Positions 10,699 through 63,439 of a stretch of 64,000 nucleotides of DNA are shown in pieces. This DNA comes from Rebecca billardiae RCC1528 (lineage: Eukaryota > Protista > Haptophyta). The stretch covers positions 558,001-622,000 of the forward strand of contig OZ251236.1 in NCBI GenBank assembly GCA_965240325.2, written 5' to 3'. Every line of letters begins with the position of its first letter. Position 1 is the first letter of the stretch. The notes beneath the pieces are model-generated. The model saw nothing but the letters and a program-made list of their open reading frames with translations, had not been told where the DNA came from and did no database searches. The position numbers and the translations under genes were made by a program.

Positions 10699-12882
10699 GA
10701 GACCCCTTCAGGGAAATCGTGCTCGGCTGGGGTCGCGGCTGCGCTGGCGAGCGGCTGAGGTCGGACCTCAGCCGAGCCGAGGCCGGCTGAGGTCGATCTC
10801 CACATTGAACATACGGGGAAAGCGCGAGATAGTAGGCGCCGCGCGCGCCGAGGCGCCTTGCGCCTCCTCGCACGTCGCACCGACGCGTGGCACGCGACTC
10901 ACGCGGCTGCGCATCGGCGCTGAGGTACAAGGGTCCATCCGCGCCGATCGCGCGCGTGCGCACGCCCTTCCTCGCCGCTGCGGCAGGCGCACGCGCTTCG
11001 CGAGCCGCCATGCGTGCGCTGGGAGGCAAAAGCGCACGCGCGCGGCGAGGCACGTTGAACGCCCCAGACGCAGCGATGCGTCGTATGGCGTAGCACATGT
11101 CACACGCGTGCTCTCAGCTTCGCGTGGCGCCGCGCGTGTGCACGGTCTCGGCGGTGCGCGTCGCGCGCTTTGCGCAGCCGCCAGCACACAGCCAGCTGAC
11201 CCACGTGCGCCCGGCGTCGTCGAGTGGGCTGTGCACTGCGCGCACGAGGCGTGGCGCTGCGTGCCTGGCTCGTGGATGGTATGATGCCCGCGCTCTGCGC
11301 CCCTCCTGGCGCTTGGCCAGCGATGTGTACCTCCGCGGCCAAGCTGTTCCGCGGCGTGGCAGGCGGTGCGATCGCAGGGCGCGGCCGGTTCCAGCCGCCG
11401 GCTCGCCGGCCATGCGCACCGGGACATGCGGTGCCATGTCGGCCTCGCGAGCGCGCGCGGGTGTCACGTAGTGATGCAACTGCCCCTCGGCGGCCGCAGG
11501 GCGGTCGCGGCCGCAGCCTGGCGCCCTGGGATCGCGCATGGCGGTCAGCTCATGCATCAGGCAGGCGAGCACGACAGCAGCCAGGCGCACTGTGAATCGG
11601 CCGCGGCCGTCTGCTGGTTCTAGCTCGCCTCTCGGACGAGTGACCGAGACTCGTCAGCCCACGCCATTTGGTTGTCGGTAGCAAACGGGTGGACTTCCGC
11701 TGGCGCTGCTGATGATCAATAGGCTGTCGCAGCAACATATCGTCGCCTGTTGCTAGCTGGCATCTCTCATCTGCTCAGCGAGCTCTGTGGACTGGGCCGT
11801 GCATGCCGGCATGCGACACAGCAACAGGCATGCTGCATGGTTTTGGCAGCCATCGAGTCACAATGCGACGAATCCTGCCGCCAGACTTGACATGTGCGCT
11901 ACCTGCCCGGCAAATGGCAACGCCCCCATCTCAGAGACATGCCAAGTTGTTCTCGAGTTGCGCTGCACCTGATGACAATACCCGACCTGTGCACTTCGGC
12001 TGCTGTGCTGAGCAACACCGTAGGCCGCAACCAGCTTGTCAATCAGATCAGCAGCGGGGGACGAGATGAGCCAGGCTGCGGCCGCGACCGCCCTGCGGCC
12101 GCCGAGGGGCAGTTGCATCACTACGTGACACCCGCGCGCGCTCGCGAGGCCGACATGGCACCGCATGTCCCGGTGCGCATGGCCGGCGAGCCGGCGGCTG
12201 GAACCGGCCGCGCCCTGCGATCGCACCGCCTGCCACGCCGCGGAACAGCTTGGCCGCGGAGGTACACATCGCTGGCCAAGCGCCAGGCGGGGCGCAGAGC
12301 GCGGGCATCATGCCATCCACGAGCCAGGCACGCAGCGCCACGCCTCGTGCGCGCAGTGCACAGCCCACTCGACGACGCCGGGCGCACGTGGGTCAGCTGG
12401 CTGTGTGCTGGCGGCTGCGCAAAGCGCGCGACGCGCACCGCCGAGACCGTGCACACGCGCGGCGCCACGCGAAGCTGAGAGCACGCGTGTGACACGTGCT
12501 ACGCCATACGACGCATCGCTGCGTCTGGGGCGTTCAACGTGCCTCGCCGCGCGCGTGCGCTTTTGCCTCCCAGCGCACGCATGGCGGCTCGCGAAGCGCG
12601 TGCGCCTGCCGCAGCGGCGAGGAAGGGCGTGCGCACGCGCGCGATCGGCGCGGATGGACCCTTGTACCTCAGCGCCGATGCGCAGCCGCGTGAGTCGCGT
12701 GCCACGCGTCGGTGCGACGTGCGAGGAGGCGCAAGGCGCCTCGGCGCGCGCGGCGCCTACTATCTCGCGCTTTCCCCGTATGTGGAGATCGACCTCAGCC
12801 GGCCTCGGCTCGGCTGAGGTCCGACCTCAGCCGCCAGCGCAGCCGCGACCCCAGCCGAGCACGATTTCCCTGAAGGGGTCTC
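10699..12882. mobile_element. Foldback non-autonomous element, copy 1 (arms 10699-11522 and 12070-12882; 547-bp spacer)
   Basis: Termini are GAGACCCCTTCAGGGAAATCG...CGATTTCCCTGAAGGGGTCTC and the arms are near-perfect reverse complements. The left arm has extra 4-bp and 7-bp insertions. No clear TSD. Confidence 0.93.
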
Positions 12883-12931
12883 GCGCCCTGCTTGCCGCGA
12901 GCTAGCGCGCGACAGCTGGCGAGCGGAGCGC

Positions 12932-15900
12932 ATGGCGCTCGTGCAGTACGCCGGGCCAGCGCCCGCGGACGCGCCGAGCATCTTCGACCTGGCGCGGCAC
13001 GACTCAAACGTCGAGGTGCTCAAGCGCGCGCTCGCCGACGACCCCGGCCGCGTGCTCGCGCGCAAAGGCGCGGGGCCGCTCGAGGCCACGCCGCTGCACG
13101 CGGCGGTGGAGGCGCACGCGGTGGCGTGCGCCCGCGCGCTCATGGGCGCGCTCGCCGAGTACGCCGCCCGCGCCGGCCAGCCCGCGCTGCCCGACGCCGC
13201 CTTGGCCGACGGCGAGGGCAACACGCCGCTCCACCTCGCCGTCGGCGCCCGGCACGCCGGCCGGCCGATGGTCGCGCCGATGGTCGGGCCGATGGTCGAG
13301 AAGATGGTCGAGGCGCTGCGCACCGCGCCGCGCTGGTTCAACCGGTGGCTGTGGCAGGTGAATAACGGCGGCCAGCGCCCCTTCCAGCTGCTGCCGCCCT
13401 CAACCTCGCGCGCGTCCGAGCGGCTGCGCGCGCTGCTGCAGCCCGCGGACCCGCCGCGCGCGCCGTTCGACAGCCTCGACATGCGCGCGCTCGAGTCGCA
13501 CGAGGCGGAGCTGGAGCGGGCGCTGGGCGCCCTCGTGCCCACGCCCGCGCCGCCCTCGCAGGAGGACGACGGGCACCACGACAAGTGCGGCCACTGCGCG
13601 AACGGCGGCAAGCTGTACACGTGCGACCGCTGCCCGCACGCGTGGCACTACGAGTGCGTCAAGGCGGCCAGCGGCGAGCTGCCCACCGACGACGAGCGGC
13701 AGGCGTGGCTCTGCCCGCGCTGCCTCGTCGACCTGTGCGCGCAGCACAGCGAGCGCGTCGCCCGCGAGCTCACGCCCGACGAGCTGCGCGCGCAGCGGCC
13801 CGGCGACGTCGAGCTGCGCGCGCTCGTGTGCTCGCTCGCGCTGCGCCCGCGCGGCGTGCTCAGGCACGCGCTGCCGGACGTCGAGGGCGCCGAGGGCGGC
13901 GAGGGCGAGGGCGCGGCCGGCTCGGCGGCGCGGGGCGGGGGCGTGCGCACGCCCCTTCCTCCCGCGCCGCCGCGCGCGCCGCCCGCGCTCATATCCGCGC
14001 GCGACTCGCCACGCACGCCCGCGCCGCCGCCCGCGGAGCGCGAGCCCAGCTCGGGCGCCGAGCAGCGGCCGCGCGTGCTCGGCGACACGATCCCGCCTGG
14101 CTGGCGCGGCCCGGCCGTGCCGCGCGTGCACTCGCTCGCGCACACGGCGCAGCTGCGCCACGCGCTGAGCACGGGCCCCGGCATCGTGCACGTGGGCGCG
14201 CCCACCGAGGCGGCGCGCGCGCTCGACGCCGAGCACCTGATCCGCTGCCTGCACCGCGCCGCGGGGCTGGGCGCGGCCGAGCCGGGCGTGCGCGCGCGCG
14301 CGCTGCAGGAGGCGGGCGGCATGCCCGCGCTCTTCCGCGGCCTCGCGCGCGCCGCGCGCGCCACCGCAGACGGCCCGACGCACGTCGCGCTGTACCACTC
14401 GGGGTACGCCCGCCAGGCGGTGCGCAACACGTCGGTGGACACGCTCGGGCAGCAGCTGAGCCGCGCGGAGCTGCAGAGAGAGCTGCACGCGCGCGGAGGG
14501 CAGCGCGCGCGCTCGGCGCGGCCGGCGCGGGCGGCGCAGCAGGCGAGGTGGCTCGCGCCCACGCCCGACGCGCAGGCGCAGACGCCGTCGTCGCAGCCGC
14601 CGGCGGAGCTCACGCTCGAAGACGTGAGCGGCCCCGCGCGACGCGCGCGCGCGCGCGCGCGCCCGCCTCTCGCGGGCTCAGCAGCCCGCGCGCGCCCACC
14701 GCCCGCCCGCCCTCTCTCCGCGCGCCCAGGCCGCCGACTTCCTCGGCGAGTCCGCCGGCGCGTACCCGCGCGTGGTGAACGTGCACACGCGCAGCGCGCC
14801 GTTGTTCGGCTCGCTGCACGCGCTGACGGCGCCGTGCGGGCTGGTGCCCGCCGAGGCGATGGTGCTCACCTCGGAGGCGGGCGCGCTCACGCGCGCGCAC
14901 GCCGACCGCACGCCGTACACCGTGGCGCTGCACCTGGTGCGCGGGCGCAAGCTGCTCATCGGCTTCGGCGCCGAGCACCTCGAGCGCGTGCTCGGCGGCT
15001 CGGAGAAGCTGCGCGCGGCGGACGACGGCATCCTGCACGGGCTCGACCCGCTGCGGCCGTGCCGCGACGACTTCCCCGAGTTTGCGCGCGCGCGGCCGAT
15101 GGCGATCGACATGCGCGCGGGCGACGTGGTCGTGTTCGCGCCGGGCGTGGTGCACTTCGTGCTCACGCTCGAGGACTCGGTGATGCTCACCGCCGAGTGC
15201 GTCGACCGCTACCAGCTCGCGCGCGCGCTCGCGGTCGCGCCCGCCGTGATGCGCACGGACGACGAGCCGCCGCGCACGCGCGCCGAGATTGCAGACGAGC
15301 TCACGCACGTGCGCACGGTGCTGGGCGTGCTGCGCGCGGCCGCGTCCGAGGCCGAGGCGGAGTGCGCCGCGGTGCTCGGGCCGGTGCTCACGCACAAGCT
15401 GCCGCACAACGCGCTGCTGCGCCTGCCCCTCTGCGCCGCGCCGCCCGGCACCGCCGCCCTCGAGCTGCGCACGCTGCGGCACGAGATGAAACGCGAGCAG
15501 GAGTTGATGCACGCGGCGCACCTGTGGGGGCCCTGGCACGCGCTCGCTGTCGACAGCGGCTACGGGATCGAAATCGTGCGCTTCGACGACGAGGCGCTCG
15601 GCGGCTTGGACGGCGCGCCCCGCCGCGCGCCGCCGCCGCCGCCACCGTCGACGACCACGACGACGACCACCGACGACGACGCCGACGACGACGCCGACGC
15701 CGACGCCGACGCCGAGGGCGAGGGCGGCGGCGGGGGCGCGCCATCGCAGCCTCGGTGGGCGGGCGCGCGCTACCCGCCGGTGGTGGCCAAGCTGGACGCC
15801 TCCGGCGCACCGACGTCGGAGCTGCGCAAGCCGACCAAGTTTGACCGGCTGCAGGGGCTGGCGGTGCTCCCCGCCGCCGACTCGCGCCCCTCCTCTCCTC

Positions 15901-17729
15901 GCTCGCACGTGTACACCGTGCTGCACGTCGAGAGCAAGGCAAACCCTCGCTTTGTGCTGCACCGCTGGAGCGCGGCGCCGAGCGGCGCGGCGGCGGCGGC
16001 CGACGGCTGTGCGGCCGACGAGCCGCCGAGGCTCGAGGTCGTGGAGGAGCTCGAGCTCGAGCTGGGCGCCGTGCACCGCTTCCAGATGTTCGGCCTCGCC
16101 GTGCTGCAGCCGTGCGTGCCCGCGCCGCCGAGGGGCGGCAGCGCGCACGGCCCGGCGCCGCCCGGCGCGCGCTCGCTGGCGAGTCTCTTCACGACCGCGG
16201 TGGACACGCACGGCCTGCTGCAGAACTGCGTGATGCGCATCGACCTCGGCCCGGACGGCGAGCTGCGCCACGCGACGCCCTCGCTGCACGCGTTCCTGCC
16301 CAAGCACGGCTGCGGCGAGCCCAAGATGCTGTGCGTGGGCCCCGCGCGCTCGCTGTTTGTGGTGACGCAGGCGAGCGCGGACGCGGGCACGACCGCCGCG
16401 CACGACGGCGCGCCCGCCGCCGCAGCGCATGACGAGCCCGCCGTGCTGCACGTCGAGCCGGACGGCGGCGTGAGCGTCTTCGCCCGCGGCACGTCGGACG
16501 GGCTGGACACGCCCCGCTCGTGCGCGTGCCTCGTCGTGCGCGGCGCGCTGCGCCTCCTCGTCGCCAACGGCGGCGGCCCGTGCGGCAAGTTCGTGACCGA
16601 GTTCGACGTGCTGCCCGGCGCACAGGAGGGCAGCGCGCGCGCGGGCGCAAAGGTGCGGCACCACGCGAGCAACATGAAGCAGCCGGTGCGCGCGCGCGCC
16701 GCCGACGACGCAAACGAGGTGCGCAAGGCCGATCTCGACGCGTTCTACCCGGTCGCGCTGCTCGTGCCGAGCGCCGCCGTGCACGCGGTCCAGCACCCGT
16801 GCGCGGCGGAGGACGCGCTGCTGCGGCCGCCACACCGCGCGCGCGCAGACGCGGACGCCGCGGCCGAGGGCGCAGCGAGAGACGAGAAGGGCGCGCCGCC
16901 GCGCGCAAAGCCCGCGCGGCTCAAGCCACCGGCGCCGCGCCCGCCCGCCGACGCCGACGCGTGCGGCTGCCCGGCCGCCAAGCCGAGCGCGTACAACGTG
17001 GGCACGCGCAAGCGCGGCGTGGACGGGCGCGAGTACGAGGTGGACGTGGCGTGCAAGCGGCTCAAGAACTCGACCATGCCCGGCGCGATCAGCCGGCACT
17101 TCTGGCGGCTCGTGGAGGCGGAGGCGGAGGAGGAGGACGCCAAGCGCGCCCACGCGGCCGGTGAGCCGGGGCCCGCGGCAGCCGGCGCGGGCGCGCTGGG
17201 CCGGCACGCGAGGCCGGCTCCACGCCGCCCCACCAGGCGGGGGAGTCCGGCGCGCGCGCCCGCGACGATCGACCTGACCAACGACACGGACGAGGAGGCG
17301 GACGCGGACGAGCACCTCGCTCCGCACGCCGCGCACCCCGACCCAGACCCGCCCGGCGCCGCGCCACTCGGCCGGCCGCCCTCGCCCGCCACGCCGTGCG
17401 CGGGCGGCCTGCAGCACACGGCCGGTGCCCCAGGGCTCGAGCCGCCGGGGCCAGGCGCCACCCCCGCGTGCGCTGCGCACCACCCTGCTGCACCGTCGGG
17501 GGCGCTGCCCGCTGGCGCCGCGCCCGCACACGTGCACGTGGACGAGGGCGCGCCGAGTCGCGACGCCGGTCCGACAGAGGACGCTGCCCCCGCCTGTGCG
17601 CCGAGCAATGCGCGCGGGGGTCACCACGCGCCCGCGATGACGACGGCGGCGCCAATGGGCTACGGCCGCGTTGTGGACGTCGAGGACGTGACGACGACGG
17701 ATGACGACGACGACGACGAAGCCTGCTAA
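12932..17729 (+). CDS. Ankyrin-PHD-JmjC chromatin protein with putative beta-propeller region
   Basis: Ankyrin motifs TPLHAAV and DGEGNTPLHLAV; PHD CGHC..CDRCPHAWH..C..WLCPRC. Intron 14624-14729 (GTGAGC..CCCAG) joins the two ORFs in frame. JmjC HAD..GRK..AGDVVVFAPGVVHFV. NHL-like segments follow (GLDTPRSCACL, LLVANGG). Confidence 0.8.
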
Positions 17730-17968
17730 CTAATAACACTGTTGACTGTACGAGTACGACAGTGTCGCCCGTCACGAGCTCGGAGTCACAGCACACGACT
17801 GCTATTATCGCGCGATATCACGATGATGATGCGCGCCGCCGACGATCGATATGCTCAGACACCATGATCTGCATCGGCGCGGCAGCACCGAGCACGGTCA
17901 GTCGACAGCCATACGTAGGCAATCACGCGCGGGTAATAAGATTAAATATATATATATATATATATATT

Positions 17969-19496
17969 ATATATTTAACGACGTGGCAGCATCGGACAAG
18001 CGTCAGGCTCAGAGTGCAACAGACACATAGAATGCGTCCGCGCCTTCCGTCCAGGTCAGATGCCAGTGCGCCACCCGCAGCCCTGCCCCCCTACGGGAGC
18101 GGGGCCGGGATGGAGCACCGCCTCGGCCTGGGGCACGCGGCGGCGACGGCAGATGCCGCCGCGGCCGAGCGCCTTCCGGATTATGGCCCGCGGTGCAGGG
18201 CGGAGCGCGCAGCGTGGAGCCCGCACCAGCGGGCCCGAACCACGTTTCAAAAAGATCTTTGATCAAGAAAAAAGGGACGGGGGGCGGCGGGAAAAAAGGG
18301 ACGGGGGGCGATTTTTAGGGCTGGCGGAGACCGAGTTTCGAGTTTTGAGATCGCATAGAGAGGTCTATTAGGCCGAAAAAGAGCGCGCCCAGCTGATTCC
18401 ATAAGTAATCGATGGATGGGACGTGAGCCTGGCCGTGACTTCAGTCCAACGGTTCGTTACGAGCGAATCGTACTCGTCTTCCCGGATCGCGTGACGTCCG
18501 GACTGGGCCACATCCGGATCGTCGGAGGTGACGTGCCCCGGCACGATGGGCGATGGCAGATATGCGGGACGGCGCCTGCACGTGCCTCCGGACCCGCCTC
18601 CCGCTTGCTGCTCACGCAGTCAGCTGCGACCGTGGCGCATGATCGCAGAAGCAGTGCCGGCAGTACGGCCTGCATCAGCTAGTGCCGCGCCGTCGTGGCG
18701 CGCGCGGTACGGTTGCGCGTTTGCAGCGCTCGCCGCTCGGCGACGGCACGCGCGTGCGGCTCAGGTGTGTCAAATGCGGTCTCGTCGGCGCGCTTTCGCC
18801 TGCCACCTCGTGCACCCGTGCCGCCAGTTTCATCGTCTTCATGAGGACTGCTGCTGCTGTCGCCATCCGCTCTCCATCACCCCGAGTCGCCGGTCGCGCG
18901 GCGCGCGCGGTAGGCACTAGGCAGGGCGTACGGTCACTCACCCGTGCAACGGGTCAAGTGGCCAGAGTACGTCTGGTCGTTGGCTGGCACGGGCCGCAGC
19001 GCTAAAGCACCCTGCTGTCACACCCGACTCCTTCAGTACTCCGAGCTCCGCGGCACGACTCACTCGGCACGATCGCGGACGGGTCGGATCCGAGCTGATC
19101 AGCCAGAGTTGGACACAGTTTGGCAGCTACTAGTAGTAATTCCGATGCCGATGGCACGATCGCGGACGGGTCGGATCCGAGCTGATCAGCCAGTTGGACA
19201 TTTGGCAGCTAGTTGTCAGACGGACGTCCGATTTGACGACCGGTGCCGGGTGCGGTCTCAGGTCCGCTGCTGTGATTGTGTGAAGTGTGAATGAGTCTCG
19301 CGGTCGCGCAGGCACTAGGCAGGGCGACGGTCGGACTAATAGCTTCAGTCATCTCAGAACCGACTTCAACTGGCGAACTGCCACTACGGCGGAGAGCCGC
19401 GATTGCACGGCCACCGCGGGCCCCCAACTGCGTTGATTCTATGCAGAAAAGGACCGCGGAACGCGGTCATATATTTAACGACGTGGCAGCATCGGA
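17969..19496. repeat. 1.5-kb segment bracketed by a perfect 28-bp direct repeat
   Basis: atatatttaacgacgtggcagcatcgga occurs at 17969-17996 and 19469-19496. Internal short duplications lie at about 18268-18310 and 19066/19153. Confidence 0.75.
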
Positions 19497-19500
19497 TATA

Positions 19501-21502
19501 TGATTAAACTTTCTTCAGGAATGCGCACCAGAAAAAGCCTTAAGAATCCGCGCGGCCCAAGATGGGGTCGGCGGCCACGACGGCGGTTATGCGCCCTCGC
19601 GCGCCTTCGAGCGGCTCGTGCGCGCCATGAAGTGCGCCAAACCATGCTCGCGACATGCTCGTTCGTCGACGCTGTTCGTTGGACGATCGCATGCCAGCCC
19701 ACGCCGACGTCTGAGTGCGCCTCGCCGCGCACGGTACAGCTTTACGGTACACGGTACGATTCGGCCGCGAGCAGCCTCGTGCGCGCGACCGAGCCAGAGG
19801 TGGTCGTCGAGAGTAGCACGAGTGGCGGCACACGCGCGGGCCTGATCGTTGCCGAATATCTGACGCACCAATCGACCTCGCCCAGCGCCATCTGCTCGTT
19901 TGCGCACGTGTCGGAAAGAATGAGCAGCTGCCTGCAAACGCCGAGCGCGCAGATGAGGCGTGGGCGAGCGAAGGGGCGGCGAGGGCCGGCGCGTGCGCGC
20001 GCGTAAATTCGAGACTCCCCATACGCATCAAAACACACCGCGCTCGCTCGTCGAGCTGCGCACGGGTATCGGTGTGCGCGCGCCAACGCGGCGCGCCGTG
20101 CACGCGCCCGGCGAATGCACACCTGCTCGCGCGCGCACGCGCGCGTGATGGACCGAGGAGGTCGCGCGAGCATGCGCGATGTGTCTGGATGGAGCACGTG
20201 TGAGGTGTAGGCTGCGCTCCGCGCGCGCTCCGCCACCGTGCACCGCGCTGTCCCTCGCCCGCGCGGTCGCTGCCGAGCCCGGATTCAAACGTGTGCGAGC
20301 CCGCAAGCGCACCTCTGAGCAGCAGTCGCAGCTATCGTGTCGAAGGCTTGGCGAGAGGCAGATGTGCATGGCAAGTCGCGCAATGGGGGTGCCCATCACG
20401 CGCACACACTCGCGCACGCTCGCCGCACCACCTCGTCGCGCCCACGTGCAGCGCGCGGGGCGCGCTTCGCGCCCGGAGCAGCTGCCGAGCGGCTGCTGCG
20501 CGCGGCGCGCGCGGCGAGTAGGGCTCAGCCAATGGTCCGAGGGCGAGCCTGCCGAGCGTCGTGCGTGGCGCGCGCGGACCTAGTACAACGCCGCGTACCA
20601 CTCGCTGCCACCATAGGGCCCGTACCGGCGAGCTGTGGCCGCCGCAGACACCAAAAAGCAGCCCAACGGTCAGCGCGCGACAGCCGACGAGCGCGTGACG
20701 CGCGCGTCCACCACCGTGATGAGCACGGACGAGCGCGCGCGCCCGTGTCGTAGCTCAGGTGGGGTCCCCCGATCGCACGCACCACCGCGCTGCCACGCCT
20801 TCGACCATCTTGTGTCACCATGTGGCCGCTCGCCGCTCGCGCCGAGCGGCTGGCGGCGCAGCTGCACGACCGGCAAACAGTCAGCGCGCAGCAAGGGTGG
20901 AGTCCGGCGAGGGTCGGCCGGACTGTCCGGCGCCACCAAGGTGGACCACGCGGTGGTCACCGGCGCGCTCGTCACCACGCTCGAGGCCATGGAGGCCGCC
21001 CACGAGCAGAAATGCTCACTGCATCTGCCTGTGCACTGCCTTTGCAGTGCTCCTGTGCGCGCGCGCGCAGCGCCAACGAGCGAAAGCGTTTGCCGTGACC
21101 TAGTCCGGGGCTCAAGGGTACCACCATCAAAGAATGGAATGCGCGCAAAGGTCACGGCAAACAAATTTTGTGTCGCCCGTGCCGCGCGCGCGCGAGCACG
21201 GCCAATGCGGCTCCTTGCACATCTGCTGCAGATCGGCTCGTGCTCGTCGAGGGCGGCGAAGAGACGGGTGCGCGCTCGCGAGCGAGCGTACCTGAGAGTG
21301 ATATCGGCATCCGATCAGGAAGAGCGGGTCGATCTGCCCGCAGCTCGTCGCACGATCGCGAGAGCGCACGTGCGGTCGACGAGGAAGAAGGCCCGCATCG
21401 TGGCGTTTCCGCCAGTGGCGGGCCGGCTCGAGATTTGACGGCGAAACTCCAGCGGATTCTTAAGGCTTTTTCTGGTGCGCATTCCTGAAGAAAGTTTAAT
21501 CA
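19501..21502. mobile_element. Non-autonomous TIR element with perfect 51-bp TIRs in TA context
   Basis: tgattaaactttcttcaggaatgcgcaccagaaaaagccttaagaatccgc (19501-19551) and its exact reverse complement (21452-21502), flanked by TATA on both sides. No intact transposase. Confidence 0.88.
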
Positions 21503-21510
21503 TATATATA

Positions 21511-22206
21511 TGTGGCGTTATAACGGAGTTATAACCGAGTGTGTCGGGAGGCTGGAAAGGCAACGCGCAGCTGGTGGACAAGGGCCGCCATCGTCTTCTA
21601 GGTCCTGCAGGTAGTTGCAGTCGATTTCCGGAGCTCATCGGCCACGGAGCTATCCTTTATCATCATCATGGCGGGCGCTGGTCCTTTCATATCGGCCAAC
21701 CACACTGGCTCCTCTGTAAGTACCCGCTCCTCTCCACTATCCGGCGCTCGAGATCATATCCAAGGTCATCTTAAGTCGGCGTGGCAACTTACCAAAGTTC
21801 ATATCAAGCAGCCCACCTAGCAGAGCTCGCTCGATCATCGGTTACACGACCTTTCGGGCCGAGCTGCTCATCTCTCGGCAGCCCCTGCTTCGGCCTGCGC
21901 ATTTGCAAAGCCCGAGGTCCCGCCATCTCCTCTGCGTTCTTTGCTTTTGCTGCCACACGCTGGCGCAGTCTGCGCGCAGCTTTGGCACCGTCGGCTCAGT
22001 CGCTCTTCCCGTTCAGCCAGGGACAAATCCCCACCACGCGCAAGTATATATTTATACATCACCATTTCGGCATGGTGTGTATCGGCATTTGCTGCATGCT
22101 CGCATATATGCTGCAATACCTGCCCTCGCATGCACATCACGCAGACTGTGGGTGATGTTCGTCCATACTCAATGGCGTCGCGTCGCTCTTCATGCAGGAG
22201 GACACA
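21511..22206. mobile_element. Possible solo LTR inserted in a (TA)n run
   Basis: A 696-bp block with TGTG...CACA ends, (TA)n on both sides, lower GC and an internal TATA-like tatatatttata. No second copy in the window. Confidence 0.35.
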
Positions 22207-22237
<31 letters not shown>

Positions 22238-23149
22238 ATATATATATAATTATTTATTAATATAAGGACGCGCTGCGCATGTCACGTTATAAGACACTCC
22301 GGGGCTTGCGTGCTATAATGTCTGCGCGGATCTGGCCTAGAAACTGAGACTAGCGATTGGCTGGTTCGCTATATCAGATATATGGTGCAGCTCGAGAGCC
22401 GCCAAGCCGCACGAGAGCAAGGCACGAAGCACCATCGTGCAGAGGGCATCACGAAGATGCGGGCCCGGAAACAGCTGCAGCCATCATGCCAGTGGGCACT
22501 TCCGAAGGGCGTTCGCTGCGAGTGAGCGAGAGGCACTGGACTGCGTCGGTTCGCTCGGCGCCTGACGATGAAAAAACCCAGTTCACCAATTCACAATTGG
22601 CAGTCCTGTGCCGCCACCAACCTTGCCTATTTGCCTAAGGCCCAGGAGCATCACAACGAGTAGGTTGTTCGGGGTCGTTGTGCGAGCGCACAGAGCAGAC
22701 TCGAAAGTCCCTCGTGGCACGAGAAGAGGGTGGCCAAGATGGCAGCCGGACTTGAGCTCGGCCGCCTGGCTCGGGCCGAATGGCAGGCAGGTGTTGATAC
22801 GGCGCATTGCGCTCCCACCGTCCTCTTAGACAATCAGTTATTGTGCCAATAACTACACATATACGCATCATAGTCACACTAAGAAACCGGGACTACGTCG
22901 CCCGCGGCTGTGACGAGTGGCCCGCCGAGGCGCAGTGCCCGTGGGACGCGGCGCGCGGCCCGACTACCGGCACCGCTACGTCTACGAGTACACTGGCCAA
23001 GTCCCGACTTCTCCTGATGACTGACTCCTGGCCAGTGCACCGCGCAGCATCCATGCAACCTCATGCCAGATTTGCTCCAAAATATGGCCCAAATTTTTCA
23101 TCGGCCTCGCCGGCCGGGCCTAAGCCCGAAAAACTCCTAAGCGGGGGGC

Positions 23150-23310
23150 TCTGCCCCCCTGCTGCGCCCCCCCGCGCCTGCGCGGCGGGCGGACCTAGCT
23201 AAGAAACTGCTGAGACTCCGTAGGCGCTCGGGCTACCGAACGGCTAAGAAACCGGGACTAGCCGTGAGATCTCTGACTTCTTATTGCCCGCGATTGCCTG
23301 TACGCGACTA
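23150..23310 (+). repeat. Dispersed short repeat, copy A (paralog at about 53290-53490)
   Basis: Shared blocks: cctgctgcgcccc, gcgggcggaccta, taagaaactgctgagactccg, aggcgctcgggc, acggctaagaa, tagccgtg.gatctct, cgcgattgcctgta. Confidence 0.75.
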
Positions 23311-23357
23311 TATATGCATATCGTCCGGCCGAGGACATATCGCACATTAAATTATTT

Positions 23358-23828
23358 TAGAGGGGTCAGAGCCCCACTGTGGCCGTGGGGTGTGTGGCCC
23401 AAAATCCAAAAACCACTTTCTGTCGTCTTGAGATGAGGCTCTCAAACTTCGGGATGTCAATATTCGCCTGAAATGATCTGGGGTCACGCTGACAAGTTTT
23501 GCGAAAATAAAATGCATATCATCATACATACTGGAGATATATGACCTCAATCTCGATGCGATCTCGGCAACATTAGTAGGGGAGATACACGATCTCCAAG
23601 GTGATCTCGCTATTTGCACCAGAATCGCACCGGCTAGATCGCATTTTGGCAGTCTGAAATTGGCACAGGCGGATTCTACGCCCTGGAAGTACAGTAAGCC
23701 TTAACGCCTACTAACTAGATCGTCCAAGTAAACTTACCCGTGTGATAGTTCATGCTAAGAGATTTCGTCGGGAGATTATTGTATTTGTGGCACCCGGGAG
23801 TGTAACGGTCGGAGCTCTGACCCCACTA
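23358..23828. mobile_element. About 470-bp MITE with hAT-like TAG...CTA termini
   Basis: 15-bp TIR tagaggggtcagagc / gctctgaccccacta (1 mismatch) with AT-rich interior. cattaaat(t) occurs in both flanks; the left copy is offset by about 5 bp. Confidence 0.6.
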
Positions 23829-24723
23829 CATTAAATTTTATCATCACGATAGCTAGTCGATAGCTACTCATAGCTTAGCGCGCTACTGTATAGACGATTC
23901 ATCACTACTACCGGTATTCGCGGCCAGTGACTCAGTCAGTCTGAGACAGTCTCAGTGGGGCAGCCGCAGCAGCGCTCGTGGTCTTAGCAATCAGGAGACC
24001 CGCGTCGTCCTACCTGTGAGTATAGCGCATCCGAGCATCGTCCTCATGCCGGCAGGCGATGACAGCGTGTCGTCCGGGACTAGCCGCGTGGCCCGCGACA
24101 TGGCATGGGATGAGTGGACGCGGTGCCAGGGCCCAGGACAGAGTGGCCCAGGTGCTCAGCGCGCCGAGTACGCAGACTACGTCTACGGTCACGGTACGGC
24201 AGCCGCGGAGCGTCGTACTGGCGTATAGCACTATACTGGCTATAGCGCCGCAGTCCGACGAGAGTCACCCGTCAGGGGCGGCGGTCAGGGCGGCCGCCCA
24301 ACTCCAAGGCGTCATCGCACGCCCGCCGAATGCGGCCGAATCGCCCGGCCGGCGGCACGCATCAGCCGATTACGCGGCAGCCGATCATCCGTTACACTTA
24401 CATCCGACGATCATCGCACGACTATACGGTCGTAGTAAGCAGACGACGTGACCGTAGTGTAAACTGATCCGTCGGAGTCGGAGGTCCCACGGTGCTCTAG
24501 CTGCTGACGCTGATGCGTGACGAGATATTGGCAGTGAATGAACTTATTAGCAGCAGCACGGCATCAGCCTAAGAGTCGCATGCACGCTGCGCGCGCCTGC
24601 GCTCCTGTTGCAGAGGATGGGTTCGAGTTCTCGAGCTTCGCGGCCTGCTGATCAGAGCCGACGGGACTCGGCTTGACGACCCTCTGATTAAGTGCTGCTG
24701 TCGTCCACTGCATGACTGTGGCA

Positions 24724-25497
24724 TCAGCCAGCGGCAACAGCCCCAGGCGCTGGCGCGGCCGGCTGCAGCAACGCCTCGACCACCTCGCCGTTGGCAAGCC
24801 AACGATCCGGCGTGCCCAGGTGGCGCTCGAGCAGTGCGTTGAGAAAATCGCTGTGCCCGAACACCGCGACCCGCCGCTCGGGCCGCCGCTGCAGCTCCGC
24901 GGCGAACTCGTCCACCCTGGCCAGGAAGCACAGCTCCGGCTCGATCAGCCCAAACTGGGCGTACCGCACGCGCGAGTCGCGCGCGTCGGTGGTGCTCGTC
25001 TCGTCGTCGACGTACCACCAGACGGGAGGCAGCTGCGCAAAGTCGAGCGTCGGGAACCGCGCCTGCAGCTCGGCCGGCGCTGAGCCGATGTCGCACGAGT
25101 CCGTCAGGTGCTCGCGCGCGAGCGCGCACACCTCGACCCGCGGCGGAGGGTGCGCGCGCCGGCCTCCCGGCGGGAAGGCGCCTAGGTACGTCTGGACAGC
25201 ACGCGTGAGAGGAGAAACTAGGACGAGCTCGACCGGCTCGCGCGCGAAGCGCTCCTCCAGCGCCGCTGCCTGCCGCGCGCCCTCTGCAGTGAGGGGCGCA
25301 TCGAACAGCGCGTCGTCGGCGCCGCTGTCGCCATACGCATGCACGGCGCTCACATTGTGCGTGGACTCCCCGTGACGGACGAGGAGCAACGTCATTGGGG
25401 CGTGCGATAGGTCGATCGCCGTGTACTGCACGGCGCGCACCAGCACGTCGAGCCTCGACCAGAGCCACCGCACCAGCGAGCGCCACCAGGGCGCCAT
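24724..25497 (-). CDS. Phosphoglycerate mutase-like histidine phosphatase (branch 1)
   Basis: Motifs LLLVRHGESTHN, DAPLT..G..QA, VSPLTRAVQT, RE, VFGHS. Start is 25497 (MAPWW..) or 25395. Confidence 0.85.
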   Translation of the reverse strand: MAPWWRSLVRWLWSRLDVLVRAVQYTAIDLSHAPMTLLLVRHGESTHNVSAVHAYGDSGADDALFDAPLTAEGARQAAALEERFAREPVELVLVSPLTRAVQTYLGAFPPGGRRAHPPPRVEVCALAREHLTDSCDIGSAPAELQARFPTLDFAQLPPVWWYVDDETSTTDARDSRVRYAQFGLIEPELCFLARVDEFAAELQRRPERRVAVFGHSDFLNALLERHLGTPDRWLANGEVVEALLQPAAPAPGAVAAG

Positions 25498-25579
25498 CGT
25501 CCGGTCCGCTCGCGAAAAATTCCGTTGCCCGCCCGAAGTTTGTGAAGTGCCCACTGCTGCTTGCGGCCTTGCTGCGCCC

Positions 25580-26989
25580 ATGGATCATTCCATAGAGGAC
25601 TCCCCGGGCGAGCTCCAACAGCTGTGCTCGGTGACATGCGGCCCGATGCTGGGGGAAGGCACGTCGGGCGCGGCGTACGCGGTCTCGAGCGCGATCGACG
25701 GCTGCCGCTACGCGCTGAAGCGCGTGCACGTGGACACTCACGAGGAGCTCGCGCGCGCGAGGCACGAGGTGACGGTGCACGCCAAGCTGCTCTCGCCCTC
25801 GATCGTCAAATACGCGTACTCGTGGGAGGAGCGGGCGGCCGACGGCGGGCACTTGCTCAACATCCTCCTCGAGCGCTGCGACCGCGAGCTCTGGGACGCG
25901 CTCACCGACGCCGCCTCGCGGCCGAGCCCGTTCGAGCGGCACGTGTGGAGCATGGCGCTGCTCGAGGCGATGCAGGAGCTCAGCCTGAAGAAGGTGGTGC
26001 ACCGCGACATCAACCCGTGGAACGTGTGGCTCGCGGGGATCGAGCTGCGCCTGGGCGACCTCGGCCTCGCCGCGCACCTCCCGCCGGGCGGCGTGCTCGA
26101 GGGCGCCGACACCGCGGGCGCGCCGCCACTCGACTCGTCCGCGCTGGGCAGCCTGTACTCTGCGCCCGAGCTGGGCGCGGTGTACGGCGCGGCCGCGGAC
26201 GTCTTCTCGGCGGGGATGGTGCTCTTCGCGGTGTGGGCGGGCGCGTGCCCCACCGCGGCGGCCGCGGGCGAGGACGAGCTCACCACGCACACCGAGGCCG
26301 TGCGCGCGAGCGGCAGCGTGCCCGGTTGGTTTGAGCAGGAGTGCGTGTACGCGGCTGTGATCGCGCGCATGGTCAGCCATCAGCCGGGCGCGCGGCCGAG
26401 CGTGGTCGAGTGCGCGCACGCGTTCCGGAGCACACCGCCCATGGGCAAGCCTGTGCCTGCGCCGGTGGGCGGCCGGCGCCGCTCGTCCGTCGGCGTGCTC
26501 GGTGGCAGCGGCGACGGTGGCGCGGGCGGCCTGCGCGCCCTGCGCCGCGCCGCGTCGGTGGTGTCAGCAGTCAGTGCGTTCAGCTCCGCAGCGCCGAGTG
26601 GCGGTGCGGCACGGCCTACGCGCCGAGCCTCGTGGGCCGGCAGCGTGGACGCCGCGCGACCTCGCAACGGCAGCGCTGCGCCCGCCCGCGACGACGCGGC
26701 GTTGCGCATGGGCCCGACTGGCACTGCCGGCACGGCCGCTCCGCGGCAGCAGCCGTCGGCTGGCAGTGCGAACGCCCGCGCAGACGCGGCGACGATGACG
26801 TCGCCGCAGCGAGCCGCCGCAGCCCCTGCCGCCGAGATACGCGATGGTTCGCGCCTCCAGCCGAATGACGCCGCGACGAAGCCGTCGCGACCCCAGCTAG
26901 CGACTGCTCGTCCGCTGCAGTTGTGCTGGCCAGCGCTGCGCGCGCGCCGCGCAAACAACACTGACAGCAGCCCTGCTGCGCATCATTGA
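25580..26989 (+). CDS. Protein kinase (divergent Ser/Thr type)
   Basis: Motifs LGEGTSG, YALKRV, HE, VHRDINPWN, LGDLGLA, YSAPE, ADVFSAG, RPS; low-complexity C-tail. Confidence 0.85.
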   Translation: MDHSIEDSPGELQQLCSVTCGPMLGEGTSGAAYAVSSAIDGCRYALKRVHVDTHEELARARHEVTVHAKLLSPSIVKYAYSWEERAADGGHLLNILLERCDRELWDALTDAASRPSPFERHVWSMALLEAMQELSLKKVVHRDINPWNVWLAGIELRLGDLGLAAHLPPGGVLEGADTAGAPPLDSSALGSLYSAPELGAVYGAAADVFSAGMVLFAVWAGACPTAAAAGEDELTTHTEAVRASGSVPGWFEQECVYAAVIARMVSHQPGARPSVVECAHAFRSTPPMGKPVPAPVGGRRRSSVGVLGGSGDGGAGGLRALRRAASVVSAVSAFSSAAPSGGAARPTRRASWAGSVDAARPRNGSAAPARDDAALRMGPTGTAGTAAPRQQPSAGSANARADAATMTSPQRAAAAPAAEIRDGSRLQPNDAATKPSRPQLATARPLQLCWPALRARRANNTDSSPAAHH

Positions 26990-27159
26990 CCAGCATATGT
27001 GGCATATCAGCGCATGTATATGCATGCATGATGCTGTTGTGTCGGTCGTCGTATTATTGGTATACGTGCAGCGGAGGGCGGCCGGACAGGCTTAACACAA
27101 GAATTAAAAGCGCATCATCAGCGCTATCCCCGGCCCCGCCGCCCCGCGGGCGGGCCCGC

Positions 27160-28779
27160 CTATCCTGCACGTGGCCCCTGCGACAGACCCGCCGCCAGCT
27201 GTGCGTGCCGCACAGCCGCGTGGATCACGCGCTCGTGGTTGAGGCCAATCGCGGGGTCCGCTGTCGCGACGTCGATCGCGCGCTGGAACGCGTCCGCTGC
27301 ATCGACAGCGCGATCGGGTCCCTGCGCTTCGCGTGCATCGCCGAGGGCGACGAGCGCGCGCACGCGCATCGCGCCGAGGCCGAGCTCTGCATCGCCACGC
27401 TTGGCTGCAGCGGAGGGCTCGCCCGCGGGCACAGGCGCGCGGTCGGCGAGCTGCTCTGCATCGGCGAGGGCCACCTCGCACTCCGCCTCCGCCTCGGCAT
27501 GCCGCTCGAGTCGGAGCAGCTGCGAGGCGAGCTGCACGCGCAGCGAGACGACGTGCGTGCGCGCCTCAGCAGACGGTGGCGGTGCCAACCTGTCGGCCAG
27601 CGTGCCCGCTGCAGCGCCTGCTGCGGACATGCCCTTGTCCATGGCGCTGAAGCCCTCCGCGACGCCGAGCGCCTGGCGCAGGATGGCAAGCGACGCCTCG
27701 TGCTTTCCCTCGCGCGCGAGCGCCGCGCCCACCTCCTCCAGCCGCGCCGCCTGCAGGCTCTTGCTGCCGCCGTACCCGCCGCCCTCTGTCGCCGACGTGG
27801 CCGTCGAGTGCGCGAGCTCGGATGGTGACGGCATCGGAGGGATGTTGAGCGCCGAGCGCACGGCGGTCATGCGAAGAAGGCTGGTCTGCGCGAAGGTGAG
27901 CACGTTGTTCACGACCCAGTACATGACCAGCCCCGCGGGGAGGTTCGCCGTCAGCGGGAACGAGGCGATGGCGAGCGCGCGCATCACCGTGCCCATCAGC
28001 CGCTGCGTCTTGGCGGCGGTTGGGTCAGGCGAGGGTGGCATGTTGCTCATCGCCGCCTGCACGGTGGCGAACATCGAGATGGAGCACGCGAGCGGGAGGA
28101 CGTACGTCGGGTCCGCGACGGTGAGGTCCGCGAACCCCGGCGGGCCGCCCGTCGCCATCGACGGGAACACCGCCCCCGCCTTCTGCAGGCCCCACATGGC
28201 CGAGAGGAAGCAAGGCAGCTGCACCAGGGGCAGCTTGAGCGACGACGCGGGCGAGACGTTGTGCCGCGCGTAGATGGCCATGAGCTCGGCCTGGATGGCA
28301 CGCATTTGCTCCTCCGACGCCTTCGCGCCCACCGCCACCTGCAGCCGCTGCTGCACCTCGCCGAGCTCTGGCGCGGCACGCGCCATGCGCACGCTGATGC
28401 GCATGGCCTCGATGTTCAGGGGCAGCAGCGCCGTGCGCAGGCACAGGGTGAGGCTGGCGATCGAGATCCACCACGGCACGTCGGCGTATGTATGCACGCC
28501 ATGCAGCAGCATGAGCACTGTGTCCGCGGGGTACGCCATCATCGTCGCAAACAGCGGCTGCGTCGGCTCCGTCACTGCTCCAACGCCCAACGCCAGATCG
28601 CCTGCAGTGCTGGGGTAAGGTGCTGGGCCGACGAAGGCCGCGGGACCTGGCGGGGGCACTTGCTCATTCGTGCCAACCGAGAGCACGCGCACGCCAGCAC
28701 CGCGCCGAGCGCACACGCGCGGCTGCGCGACGCGCCCGAGTGGCGTGACGCGACACGCGACGCGTGCCCAGCGCTGCAT
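27160..28779 (-). CDS. Oxa1/YidC-family mitochondrial membrane insertase with TPR-like C-terminal extension
   Basis: Arg-rich presequence; PWWISIASLTLCLRTALLPL, PLVQLPCF, DLTVADPTYVLP, LPAGLVMYWVVNN..Q, LNIP; then a helical TPR-like tail. Confidence 0.88.
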   Translation of the reverse strand: MQRWARVACRVTPLGRVAQPRVCARRGAGVRVLSVGTNEQVPPPGPAAFVGPAPYPSTAGDLALGVGAVTEPTQPLFATMMAYPADTVLMLLHGVHTYADVPWWISIASLTLCLRTALLPLNIEAMRISVRMARAAPELGEVQQRLQVAVGAKASEEQMRAIQAELMAIYARHNVSPASSLKLPLVQLPCFLSAMWGLQKAGAVFPSMATGGPPGFADLTVADPTYVLPLACSISMFATVQAAMSNMPPSPDPTAAKTQRLMGTVMRALAIASFPLTANLPAGLVMYWVVNNVLTFAQTSLLRMTAVRSALNIPPMPSPSELAHSTATSATEGGGYGGSKSLQAARLEEVGAALAREGKHEASLAILRQALGVAEGFSAMDKGMSAAGAAAGTLADRLAPPPSAEARTHVVSLRVQLASQLLRLERHAEAEAECEVALADAEQLADRAPVPAGEPSAAAKRGDAELGLGAMRVRALVALGDAREAQGPDRAVDAADAFQRAIDVATADPAIGLNHERVIHAAVRHAQLAAGLSQGPRAG

Positions 28780-28953
28780 CGTGTCGTGCCGGGAGGGTCA
28801 CTGGCCGAGAATTCCTTTGGCCGAGCCTCCCTTGGCCGAGCGGCGCCGGCCGGGCGCACAGCGCGCGTTTACTTCCGCGCGACGACCTCACTGATCTATG
28901 GATTCATGCCGGATCGGCTTTGATGGCTTCCGCGCGCCCGAGCCGCACGGCTC

Positions 28954-31126
28954 GAGACCCCTTCAGGGAAATCGTGCTCGGCTGGGGTCGCGGCTGCGCT
29001 GGCGGCTGAGGTCGGACCTCAGCCGAGCCGAGGCCGGCTGAGGTCGATCTCCACATACGGGGAAAGCGCGAGATAGTAGGCGCCGCGCGCGCCGAGGCGC
29101 CTTGCGCCTCCTCGCACGTCGCACCGACGCGTGGCACGCGACTCACGCGGCTGCGCATCGGCGCTGAGGTACAAGGGTCCATCCGCGCCGATCGCGCGCG
29201 TGCGCACGCCCTTCCTCGCCGCTGCGGCAGGCGCACGCGCTTCGCGAGCCGCCATGCGTGCGCTGGGAGGCAAAAGCGCACGCGCGCGGCGAGGCACGTT
29301 GAACGCCCCAGACGCAGCGATGCGTCGTATGGCGTAGCACGTGTCACACGCGTGCTCTTAGCTTCGCGTGGCGCCGCGCGTGTGCACGGTCTCGGCGGTG
29401 CGCGTCGCGCGCTTTGCGCAGCCGCCAGCACACAGCCAGCTGACCCACGTGCGCCCGGCGTCGTCGAGTGGGCTGTGCACTGCGCGCACGAGGCGTGGCG
29501 CTGCGTGCCTGGCTCGTGGATGGCATGATGCCCGCGCTCTGCGCCCCGCCTGGCGCTTGGCCAGCGATGTGTACCTCCGCGGCCAAGCTGTTCCGCGGCG
29601 TGGCAGGCGGTGCGATCGCAGGGCGCGGCCGGTTCCAGCCGCCGGCTCGCCGGCCATGCGCACCGGGACATGCGGTGCCATGTCGGCCTCGCGAGCGCGC
29701 GCGGGTGTCACGTAGTGATGCAACTGCCCCTCGGCGGCCGCAGGGCGGTCGCGGCCGCAGCCTGGCGCCATGGGATCGCGCATGGCGGTCAGCTCATGCA
29801 TCAGGCAGGCGAGCACGACAGCAGCCAGGCGCACTGTGAATCGGCCGCGGCCGTCTGCTGGTTCTAGCTCGCCTCTCGGACGAGTGACCGAGACTCGTCA
29901 GCCCACGCCATTTGGTTGTCGGTAGCGAACGGGTGGACTTCCGCTGGCGCTGCTGATGATCAATAGGCTGTCGCAGCAACATATCGTCGCCTGTTGCTAG
30001 CTGGCATCTCTCATCTGCTCAGCGAGCTCTGTGGACTGGGCCGTGCATGCCGGCATGCGACACAGCCACAGGCATGCTGCATGGTTTTGGCAGCCATCGA
30101 GTCACAATGCGACGAATCCTGCCGCCAGACTTGACATGTGCGCTACCTGCCCGGCAAATGGCAACGCCCCCATCTCAGAGACATGCCAAGTTGTTCTCGA
30201 GTTGCGCTGCACCTGATGACAATACCCGACCTGTGCACTTTGGCTGCTGTGCTGAGCAACACCGTAGGCCGCAACCAGCTTGTCAATCAGATCAGCAGCG
30301 GGGGACGAGATGAGCCAGGCTGCGGCCGCGACCGCCCTGCGGCCGCCGAGGGGCAGTTGCATCACTACGTGACACCCGCGCGCGCTCGCGAGGCCGACAT
30401 GGCACCGCATGTCCCGGTGCGCATGGCCGGCGAGCCGGCGGCTGGAACCGGCCGCGCCCTGCGATCGCACCGCCTGCCACGCCGCGGAACAGCTTGGCCG
30501 CGGAGGTACACATCGCTGGCCAAGCGCCAGGCGGGGCGCAGAGCGCGGGCATCATGCCATCCACGAGCCAGGCACGCAGCGCCACGCCTCGTGCGCGCAG
30601 TGCACAGCCCACTCGACGACGCCGGGCGCACGTGGGTCAGCTGGCTGTGTGCTGGCGGCTGCGCAAAGCGCGCGACGCGCACCGCCGAGACCGTGCACAC
30701 GCGCGGCGCCACGCGAAGCTAAGAGCACGCGTGTGACACGTGCTACGCCATACGACGCATCGCTGCGTCTGGGGCGTTCAACGTGCCTCGCCGCGCGCGT
30801 GCGCTTTTGCCTCCCAGCGCACGCATGGCGGCTCGCGAAGCGCGTGCGCCTGCCGCAGCGGCGAGGAAGGGCGTGCGCACGCGCGCGATCGGCGCGGATG
30901 GACCCTTGTACCTCAGCGCCGACGCGCAGCCGCGTGAGTCGCGTGCCACGCGTCGGTGCGACGCGCGAGGAGGCGCAAGGCGCCTCGGCGCGCGCGGCGC
31001 CTACTATCTCGCGCTTTCCCCGTATGTGGAGATCGACCTCAGCCGGCCTCGGCTCGGCTGAGGTCCGACCTCAGCCGCCAGCGCAGCCGCGACCCCAGCC
31101 GAGCACGATTTCCCTGAAGGGGTCTC
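28954..31126. mobile_element. Foldback non-autonomous element, copy 2 (813-bp arms 28954-29766 and 30314-31126), 5-bp TSD GGCTC
   Basis: Near-identical to 10699-12882 and in the same orientation. Flanks are cacGGCTC|GAGACC ... GGTCTC|GGCTCgcac. Confidence 0.95.
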
Positions 31127-31210
31127 GGCTCGCACCCCCCCCCCCGTCCGGCGTGGAGAGGTCGCCAGCTCTCGCTCGCCCGCCAGCTGACCTCGCCGCC
31201 GCTCGCCGAG

Positions 31211-61410: not shown

Positions 61411-61737
61411 GGAGGCGCGGGCGCGCATACGAGGGCGGCCCGATGACCGGCGCGGGCCGGCGTCCAGTGCGCTGCCGGCGCTGGACGAGGACCGGACCGT
61501 CACTGCGGGCGTCGTCGTCAGGACTCAGGCATCGTACGAACTGCCGTGGAGTCATTAACTGCGCGCGCATCAACGGCGCTGCGGCTGAGACCTGACTCCT
61601 GAGGCTGAGCCGGCGCCCCGGCGGCCCGGGACGCAGCACCGGCCGTCAGGCGGCGCCGTTCCCGGCCCCGGCGCGCTGTGATGATGATCGAGCATCGGCC
61701 CGATCGTCATCGTCGTAGTCGCAGATATATATCTTAA

Positions 61738-63439
61738 GAGATAATGTCAGCTGTATTGCCGTTTTGGAAAGTGTGGTCAGGTGTATTGCCAAACGCACGT
61801 TTTGACTACCGTCGTCAGGTGTATTGCCGTTTTCCATGTTTGGGAATCACGTGTCAATCTTGTTGCCACGTCGAATACTTGTGTCAGGTGTATTGCCGTG
61901 GATGATGGCCCAATACTTTGTCCAGCTGTATTGCCGTCGCGTAGTGTGGGTCAGTTGTGTTGCCGTTTGCGCATCTTTGATTCAGGTTTGTTGCCGCGAT
62001 CGCCCACGCGCTGATGATGGCGCTTGCGCCCACGCGCCGCCGGCGTGCGCGGCGTGCCCTTGAGCAGGCCTAGCTGATCCCAGGCCAGAAGAGTGACGTT
62101 CAACGACGACGATCTCTGCCGGGGTAGCGCCGTGTTTCTCGACATCATCAAGTCGAACGACGAGCTGAACCGTGGACCGGAATCTGCACAAACGCTGCCG
62201 CATGCGCGCGCAGTGCAACACGCGCGTGCACCTCGGGCTACTCGCCGTCTACGCGGAGACGGGCGAGAATCCGTCGCGACTTCTATCGAATCGGCGTTGC
62301 TCCGTGCTCACTTCGACTCCGGGACCGTCAAGCGCGCAGTCGATGACATTGCGACGGCAGCGCATGCAGGTGCATGCGTGAAGCAGGGTGAGCGTGTGTT
62401 GCTGCGCCCCGATTTGCGGGAGTCGAACGTGCACGACGGGCGTGTGCTCTTCAACGGCCTCAAGAAGCTTGACCAACGCGACGCGCGTCTCCCTCACTGC
62501 CTGCCATCGACTGTCATTCACACCGTGGCGATCAACCAACGCGCGTCGCTCTCGCTCGTGCAACACTGCTGGCGCGTGCCTTTTTGCGATTGTCATCACT
62601 CCAACAGCAGACTGCCCTGTGGCCAACCGTGTGCAGGTCGCTGACCGTGCGCCAGTCGCATTCGTCAACGCAGGCTGATTGGCCCGTGGAGGAGGAAGTC
62701 CAAGGCGTACTGCCAGCTGGGACACAACGCACCGACTGGCGGGCGGTGCGCCGCGCGCGCCTCGACGAGCCAGCAAGCAGGAGGGGCAGGCGACGCTTCC
62801 TGCTGCTGCTTGGAACCCGAGTGGCAGGCTTGGCGAGCGCGGTCGCAGCTTGAGGCGGCGCGTGCAGCGGCATGGGACGCGATGCGGCTCACGTGGCCGC
62901 TGAAGTAGCAGCAGTCCCGATGGCGCTGGCGGCCGGCTGGCGGGCGGCAAGCGCGACGGCGACGGGAAGCGCCGACTGCTACTGGAAGTCAAGATGAGCT
63001 ACGCAGGCCGCATGATGATGGCATGTCGGTTGGTTGCAGTTGCGTATCATGCATGCCGCGCGCAGGCAGTCGCAGCTCTGCACGCACGCGCACACGGGCT
63101 GCGCGAGTCTCTTGTCTGAGTGCGAGTCGTGCCCCAGCCACCCGAGCTGCTGGCGGCAATACAACTGACACAGCATAGTTATGGAAAGGGCAATATTTCT
63201 GAGCAGACTATGTTCAAGCTCGAAAACGGCAATATTCTCGAACCAAGTAGTGTGAAAGGGTCATTGGTTTGAAACCAGTATTTGAGGGGCAATATTGTTG
63301 ACACACTATCCAAAAGCGGCAATATTCTTGACCCATACTACTGAAAACGGCAATACAACTGACCACGGTAGTCATAACGTGCTTTTGGCAATACAACTGA
63401 CCACACTATCCAAAGCGGCAATACAACTGACGTCGGCTC
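61738..63439. mobile_element. Mutator-like (MULE) non-autonomous element with 9-bp TSD and subterminal repeats
   Basis: GAG...CTC termini and about 100-bp imperfect TIRs built from TCAG(G/C/T)TGTATTGCC repeats. TSD is atatcttaa (61729-61737) / atatattaa (63440-63448). Internal decayed coding with SWIM-like FCDC..RLPC. Confidence 0.8.

Follow-up and report, generated by a model that had tools for sequence, protein, structure and literature searches.

What kind of mobile element accounts for two nearly identical long palindromes that lie 18 kb apart upstream of genes in a haptophyte alga? We studied a 64,000-nt stretch of the genome of Rebecca billardiae RCC1528 (contig C19:558001-622000, in GenBank OZ251236.1; hereafter the window), within an assembly of 72 Mb on 41 contigs that is about 70% GC and carries AT and AG microsatellites. 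In our judgment there is roughly an 80% probability that the two palindromes are copies of a non-autonomous, non-coding foldback DNA transposon, here called family A, which belongs to a small clade made up of A1, A2, B1, B2 and probably D. The nature of the enzyme that would mobilise this clade is a separate matter, and we treat it after the evidence for the family itself.

A dispersed family of foldback elements

Copy 2 (28954..31126; 2173 bp) consists of a left arm of 813 nt (28954..29766, + strand, 73% GC), a spacer of 547 nt (29767..30313, 60% GC) and a right arm of 813 nt (30314..31126, - strand). Repeat search and reading of the sequence together place two mismatches between its arms over the 813 nt. 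Copy 1 (10699..12882; 2184 bp) has the same layout, with a left arm at 10699..11522 (+ strand), a non-coding 547-nt spacer at 11523..12069 and an 813-nt right arm at 12070..12882 (- strand). Its left arm is 824 nt long because it contains two small extra pieces relative to the right arm, of 4 bases near 10747-10753 and 7 bases near 10802-10812. The two copies are 99.5% identical and both end GAG...CTC, the end sequence starting GAGACC. An earlier reading of the window from its letters alone (the original prediction) had described two near-identical elements with arms of about 813 nt, a 547-nt non-coding spacer and GAG...CTC ends, and all of this is present, with the exception of the longer left arm of copy 1.

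We found no coding capacity in family A. Its only open reading frames (ORFs) are rich in Arg and Ala, as GC-rich sequence predicts, the spacer of copy 2 contains no convincing ORF, and an Rfam search of the element returned no match.

A genome-wide search, of the kind that the original prediction had proposed, recovered nine full copies of family A on six contigs, plus a single solo arm and older fragments that are 85-95% identical. The full copies fall into two subfamilies. A1 comprises both window copies, C7a, C7b and C15a, which are 99.0-99.7% identical to one another, and A2 comprises C15b, C38, C1 and C5, at 98.6-99.4%; identity between A1 and A2 is 97.3%, and no two copies are identical. 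The flanks differ from copy to copy and three of the copies hold nested insertions, so family A is a dispersed transposon family, neither an assembly error nor a segmental duplication. With arms that account for 2 x 813 of 2173 nt, ORFs that are GC artefacts, and nine copies, eight of them with a target duplication, it has the structure of the foldback class. The description of the family as young and recently active is sound only in a relative sense: the family is small and its subfamilies diverge internally by 0.3-1%, but three copies have had time to receive nested insertions and one is without a duplication.

That two of nine copies should lie only 18 kb apart in 72 Mb has a chance of about 2% by our own estimate, and this spacing hints at local hopping. 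Against local hopping, the window copies are not each other's closest relatives. We looked in the genome for an empty site or haplotig of copy 1 and found none; its flanking sequence occurs nowhere else in the genome, which leaves no empty allele or duplicate for comparison.

Two further loci hold parts related to family A. At C26:899170-900483 (L033:252-1565), two 250-nt inverted arms of a different foldback-like element precisely bracket a solo family A arm of about 800 nt, an arrangement that may have arisen by nested insertion followed by deletion or by palindrome-mediated rearrangement. At C29:918699-918847 (L055:4700-4848), a miniature relic of about 150 bp lacks arms and has a family A-type tip, diverged in sequence, at each end.

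A five-base target duplication with a weakly palindromic target

Copy 2 is flanked on both sides by GGCTC (28949..28953 and 31127..31131), as had been proposed. A perfect 5-bp duplication, with a different sequence at each site, is found at eight of the nine family A copies, and likewise at all five intact copies of family B, a sister family described below. Such a match is expected by chance at about 0.2% of sites at a GC content of about 70%; it was observed at 13 of 14 intact copies. When duplication lengths were tabulated, a step that had also been suggested from the window, all 13 copies with a duplication gave 5 bp. The alternative reading of the copy 2 flanks as a 7-bp duplication, CGGCTCG, fits only 7 of the 13 family A and B copies, and the true length is therefore 5 bp.

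We rebuilt the 13 empty sites and symmetrised them, which gave 26 cases for a target logo. A C at -3 or a G at +3 occurs in 20 of 26 cases, and a G at position 2 or a C at position 4 of the duplication in 16 of 26. On these counts the target is weakly palindromic, C|nGnCn|G.

We also considered whether the two window copies and the 16 kb between them form a composite transposon, as the outer flanks, GGCTT and GGCTC, agree at four of five bases. We set this aside because copy 2 has a perfect duplication of its own.

Sister families and a shared tip

Family B elements are 2.57 kb long with arms of 800-810 nt, plus one copy of 1.4 kb, and their first 21 nt are the same as those of family A. Two subtypes, B1 and B2, are about 88% identical apart from a subterminal 10-mer (see below). 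The arms of A and B are colinear and 62% identical over about 520 nt (E 7e-31), which marks them as distant homologues; the foldback build therefore predates the divergence of A and B. Family D, probably a further member of the foldback clade, is seen as inverted pairs spaced about 2.55 kb at C10:66019-68588, C5:3609852-3612421 and at least six more loci, with about 71% identity to positions 194-344 of the family A arm.

Family C (for example C5:36067-38470; L047-L052) is built differently. Its elements are 2.4 kb long, have 38-bp inverted ends and are flanked by TA in A|TA|T contexts; a Pfam search of family C gave no match. After the TA, family C starts with a 14-nt core, GACCCCTTCAGGGA, that is the same as the sequence of A and B after their first two bases. 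Thus, two groups with different duplication rules have one tip core in common. The TA flanks of family C are like those of Tc1/mariner elements, whereas A and B differ from Tc1/mariner in having 5-bp duplications of varied sequence and do not show a TA target.

A common plan for the arm ends

The first 100 nt of the arm follow the same plan in A, B1 and B2: an identical 21-nt tip (28954..28974, + strand, in copy 2), four slots for a 10-mer, and a CATACGG block near position 100. In family A the 10-mer is GGCTGAGGTC, which occupies arm positions 51-60 and 84-93 in one orientation and 62-71 in the inverted one. These are the three occurrences per arm, two of them forming a hairpin, that the original prediction had noticed; a fourth copy with one mismatch lies at 27-36, so that the whole subterminal array of copy 2 spans 28980..29046 (+ strand). 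Slots 2 and 3 form a hairpin with a stem of 10-12 bp across A, B1 and B2 (10 bp in copy 2). The 10-mer itself differs between subfamilies, being GGCTGAGGTC in A, GGCTTGGGTC in B1 and GGCCCGGATG in B2, and all four slots change together. Judging from this arrangement, the slots are putative binding sites of a sequence-specific protein, most simply the transposase, and the inverted pair may be a dimer site or a structural hairpin.

The hairpin also attracts other elements. In three of the nine family A copies this 21-bp hairpin is interrupted by a nested element: a 1.1-kb foldback with CAAGGG ends in the copy on C5 (L009:395-1500), with a 7-bp duplication CCTCAGC; a 1.04-kb element in the copy on C1 (L008:3652-4695), with a 3-bp duplication TCA; and a 108-bp miniature element in a copy on C15 (L005:1393-1500), with a 9-bp duplication GCTGAGGTC. 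By our own estimate, the chance of three independent insertions falling at random into these 42 of 2173 bp is about 7e-6. This makes the hairpin a hot spot where three other transposon families insert.

The extra pieces in the left arm of copy 1, at 10747-10753 and 10802-10812, fall into this zone as well and read GCG-A-GCG and ACAT-TGA-ACAT. In sequence they look like excision footprints of elements with 3-bp and 4-bp duplications.

Homogenisation of the arms

The arms within one copy differ at 0-10 of 813 sites (99-100% alike). Our variant counts leave out the subterminal zone, where the nested insertions intrude. Fifteen sites vary in one arm only (14 substitutions, which are those scored for direction below, and one 1-nt gap), 14 variants occur in both arms of one copy and in no other copy, and all ten sites that are diagnostic of the subfamilies agree between arms. 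At two sites, the same difference between left and right arm has been kept in two sister copies. Transposition therefore copies both arms as they are, and homogenisation is accordingly a separate event rather than a regeneration of one arm at each jump.

The direction of change depends on the class of variant. Private changes confined to one arm run 2 AT-to-GC against 12 GC-to-AT and those in the spacer 3 against 9, whereas those present in both arms run 9 against 3. The single-arm and both-arm classes differ by Fisher's test (p=0.004), as do single-arm and spacer changes pooled against both-arm changes (p=0.0026). This pattern fits the signature of GC-biased gene conversion from arm to arm, and such a bias fits the GC content of the arms (73%) compared to that of the spacer (60%). 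We saw no clear sign that the spacer evolves faster than the arms, with 12 fixed differences in 547 nt and 10 in 813 nt.

A model for mobility and the evidence against it

Taken as a foldback DNA transposon, family A would move by cut and paste, using a DDE-type transposase supplied in trans. This enzyme would recognise the tip, make a 5-bp staggered cut in the target and probably bind the 10-mers as a dimer; the concerted exchange of the 10-mer between subfamilies would then reflect co-evolution with the transposase. We only infer cut and paste, since neither an empty site nor an excision footprint of family A itself was seen.

That absence is the first of several observations that weigh against our interpretation. 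Another is window copy 1, the sole exception to the duplication rule among families A and B, with GGCTT on its left and GCGCC on its right. The counts behind the conversion bias are small, and variants shared by both arms could stem from source copies that were not sampled.

The remaining objections concern the enzyme. The original prediction had proposed a look for longer copies with a transposase between the same inverted repeats; none is among the tip matches. Pattern searches of the genome with 26-, 18- and 12-nt versions of the tip and with an inner 12-mer recovered only elements of at most 3.1 kb or solo ends, and exact matches to the tip core either pair within 3.1 kb or stand alone, so that no autonomous partner was found among them. 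Solo tips on C5, C23, C1 and C29 run into host genes (for DnaJ, Myb, RPA34, a kinase and an RTX-repeat protein), truncated copies or the 150-bp relic. The 21-nt tip had no match in a metagenome collection. Among domains, a Pfam search of the genome for RAG1 (PF12940) gave no match, but it matched no control either and is weak; the hAT-like RNase-H gave no match; the hAT dimerisation domain gave one broken match with no other domain beside it; and the MULE domain gave two matches.

Two further searches led elsewhere. One look-alike motif, GAGCCCTCTTCAGGAAAA, turned out to lie within an unrelated repeat, and a Pfam Chromo search of the genome for chromodomain-bearing hAT-like transposons returned host genes only, such as one for a SET/CXXC/chromo protein.

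Comparison with known superfamilies

Drosophila FB and Galileo elements likewise have two long inverted arms around a short spacer and are non-coding, and in them too the two arms of an element resemble each other more than they resemble the arms of other copies. Duplications are 9 bp in FB and 7 bp in Galileo, compared to 5 bp here, and the arms of family A are unique sequence, not tandem repeats.

The original prediction held that the combination of features fits none of MuDR, Sola3 and Transib cleanly, and the 5-bp duplication with GAG...CTC ends supports this. It had also tied 5-bp duplications to Transib-type elements. Transib does give 5 bp, but this length is not peculiar to it: hAT5 has 5-bp duplications (PMC12730594) and Ginger2 duplications of 4-5 bp (PMC10045372). 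Because these superfamilies are on record, a 5-bp duplication with GAG ends is unusual but is not proof of a new superfamily. We raise only tentatively, as a possibility well short of even odds, that A and B stand for a superfamily of eukaryotic DNA transposons not yet described. The transposase of such a superfamily would recognise a short tip together with an array of 10-mers able to form a hairpin, it would have switched specificity repeatedly, as the concerted 10-mer exchanges between A, B1 and B2 suggest, and the enzyme would be encoded without recognisable ends or have been lost from this strain.

It is unlikely, to our minds, that family A is instead a non-autonomous hAT member from a hAT5-like lineage, although several features point that way. 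Short subterminal motifs in both orientations are typical of hAT elements, and short subterminal motifs are found here as in hAT5. A duplication of 5 bp, in place of the canonical hAT 8 bp, is recorded for hAT families (PMC12730594), and the second and third bases of the family A end, A and G, obey the hAT end rule, under which the third base is always G (PMC1131882). However, the end GAGAC agrees with the usual (C/T)A(A/G)NG pattern only at these two positions and departs from it in its first base, G, and its fifth, C. Further, hAT5 is described from animals, and the broken dimerisation-domain fragment was all that the genome yielded, with no hAT-like RNase-H.

We consider it quite improbable that family A is a deletion derivative of an element with an rve integrase, whether Ginger2/TDD or a Polinton or virophage-like element. 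Polinton-like elements usually have long inverted ends, and integrase substrates usually end TG...CA or AG...CT. Duplications of 4-6 bp, a range that includes 5 bp, are recorded for elements of this kind, with 4-5 bp in Ginger2 and 6 bp in Polinton, and LTR elements give 3-6 bp (PMC10045372). The GAG...CTC ends of family A are nevertheless not of the integrase type, our genome searches found no long element with the same arms or tips, and arms that account for 75% of the element and have homologues from family to family are unlike the product of a recent internal deletion.

We give little credence to a Mutator/Foldback lineage with an unusually short duplication. The GAG-type ends and long inverted repeats of family A are typical of Mutator-like elements, among which Drosophila FB is filed. 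MULE domains are present in the genome, and the 4-10-bp range of duplications recorded for IS256/MuDR (PMC10045372) spans 5 bp. Yet all 13 copies with a duplication have strictly 5 bp rather than the 8-10 bp of Mutator and FB, and the Mutator-like miniature element nested in one family A copy gives a 9-bp duplication, so the resident Mutator machinery behaves canonically.

A Transib-like element of the CMC clade is very unlikely. Transib does make fixed 5-bp duplications in GC-rich targets framed by c...g, such as cCASTGg (PMC1131882), and these resemble C|nGnCn|G. On the other hand, the CAC(A/T)ATG heptamer that is perfectly conserved at both Transib ends (PMC1131882) is not at the ends of family A, which has GAG ends and 813-nt arms where Transib has short inverted repeats of 38 bp, and the genome gave no RAG1-like match, a weak negative given that the search matched no control.

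Finally, assemblers struggle with long perfect palindromes, and the window copies are only 18 kb apart. An assembly artefact, which the original prediction had allowed for, or a local segmental duplication is nevertheless scarcely credible: the copies occupy nine loci on six contigs, the flanks differ at every locus, eight loci show their own 5-bp duplication, copies have private variants and nested insertions, and the copy 1 flanks are unique in the genome.

Genomic setting of the window copies

Copy 1 lies 550 bp downstream of a PRA-PH ORF, and an ankyrin/PHD ORF (12932-15844, + strand) follows it, with 49 bp between the end of the copy and the first ATG. Copy 2 lies upstream of an Oxa1/YidC-like ORF (27160-28779, - strand), with 174 bp between the ATG and the start of the copy.

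The window contains two other elements with inverted ends. A 2.0-kb element at 19496-21507 has perfect 56-nt inverted ends and lies in an AT-repeat context (TA-type flanks); a 267-aa ORF inside it, at 20635-21438, has no Pfam match. A 1.7-kb element at 61735-63442, between AT-rich flanks, has 100-nt inverted ends that are 87% complementary, each with three occurrences of a 15-nt motif, GTCAGNTGTATTGCC.

Implications

DNA transposons are conventionally sorted by the length of their duplication and the sequence of their ends. A consistent 5-bp rule with GAG ends and no visible partner enzyme points either to a blind spot in this classification or, within an algal lineage that has received little study, to an unusual branch of some known superfamily. 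Family A and its relatives also offer two natural cases: palindrome arms that probably stay identical through GC-biased conversion while their lineages drift to 62% identity, and a DNA hairpin that serves as the landing site of several unrelated transposons. Copies 1 and 2 lie 49 and 174 bp, respectively, upstream of the start codon of a gene, which opens effects on expression and the production of hairpin RNA to testing. If transcribed through, either copy would yield an RNA hairpin of about 800 bp, and family A may thus be a source of double-stranded RNA or small RNA in this alga.

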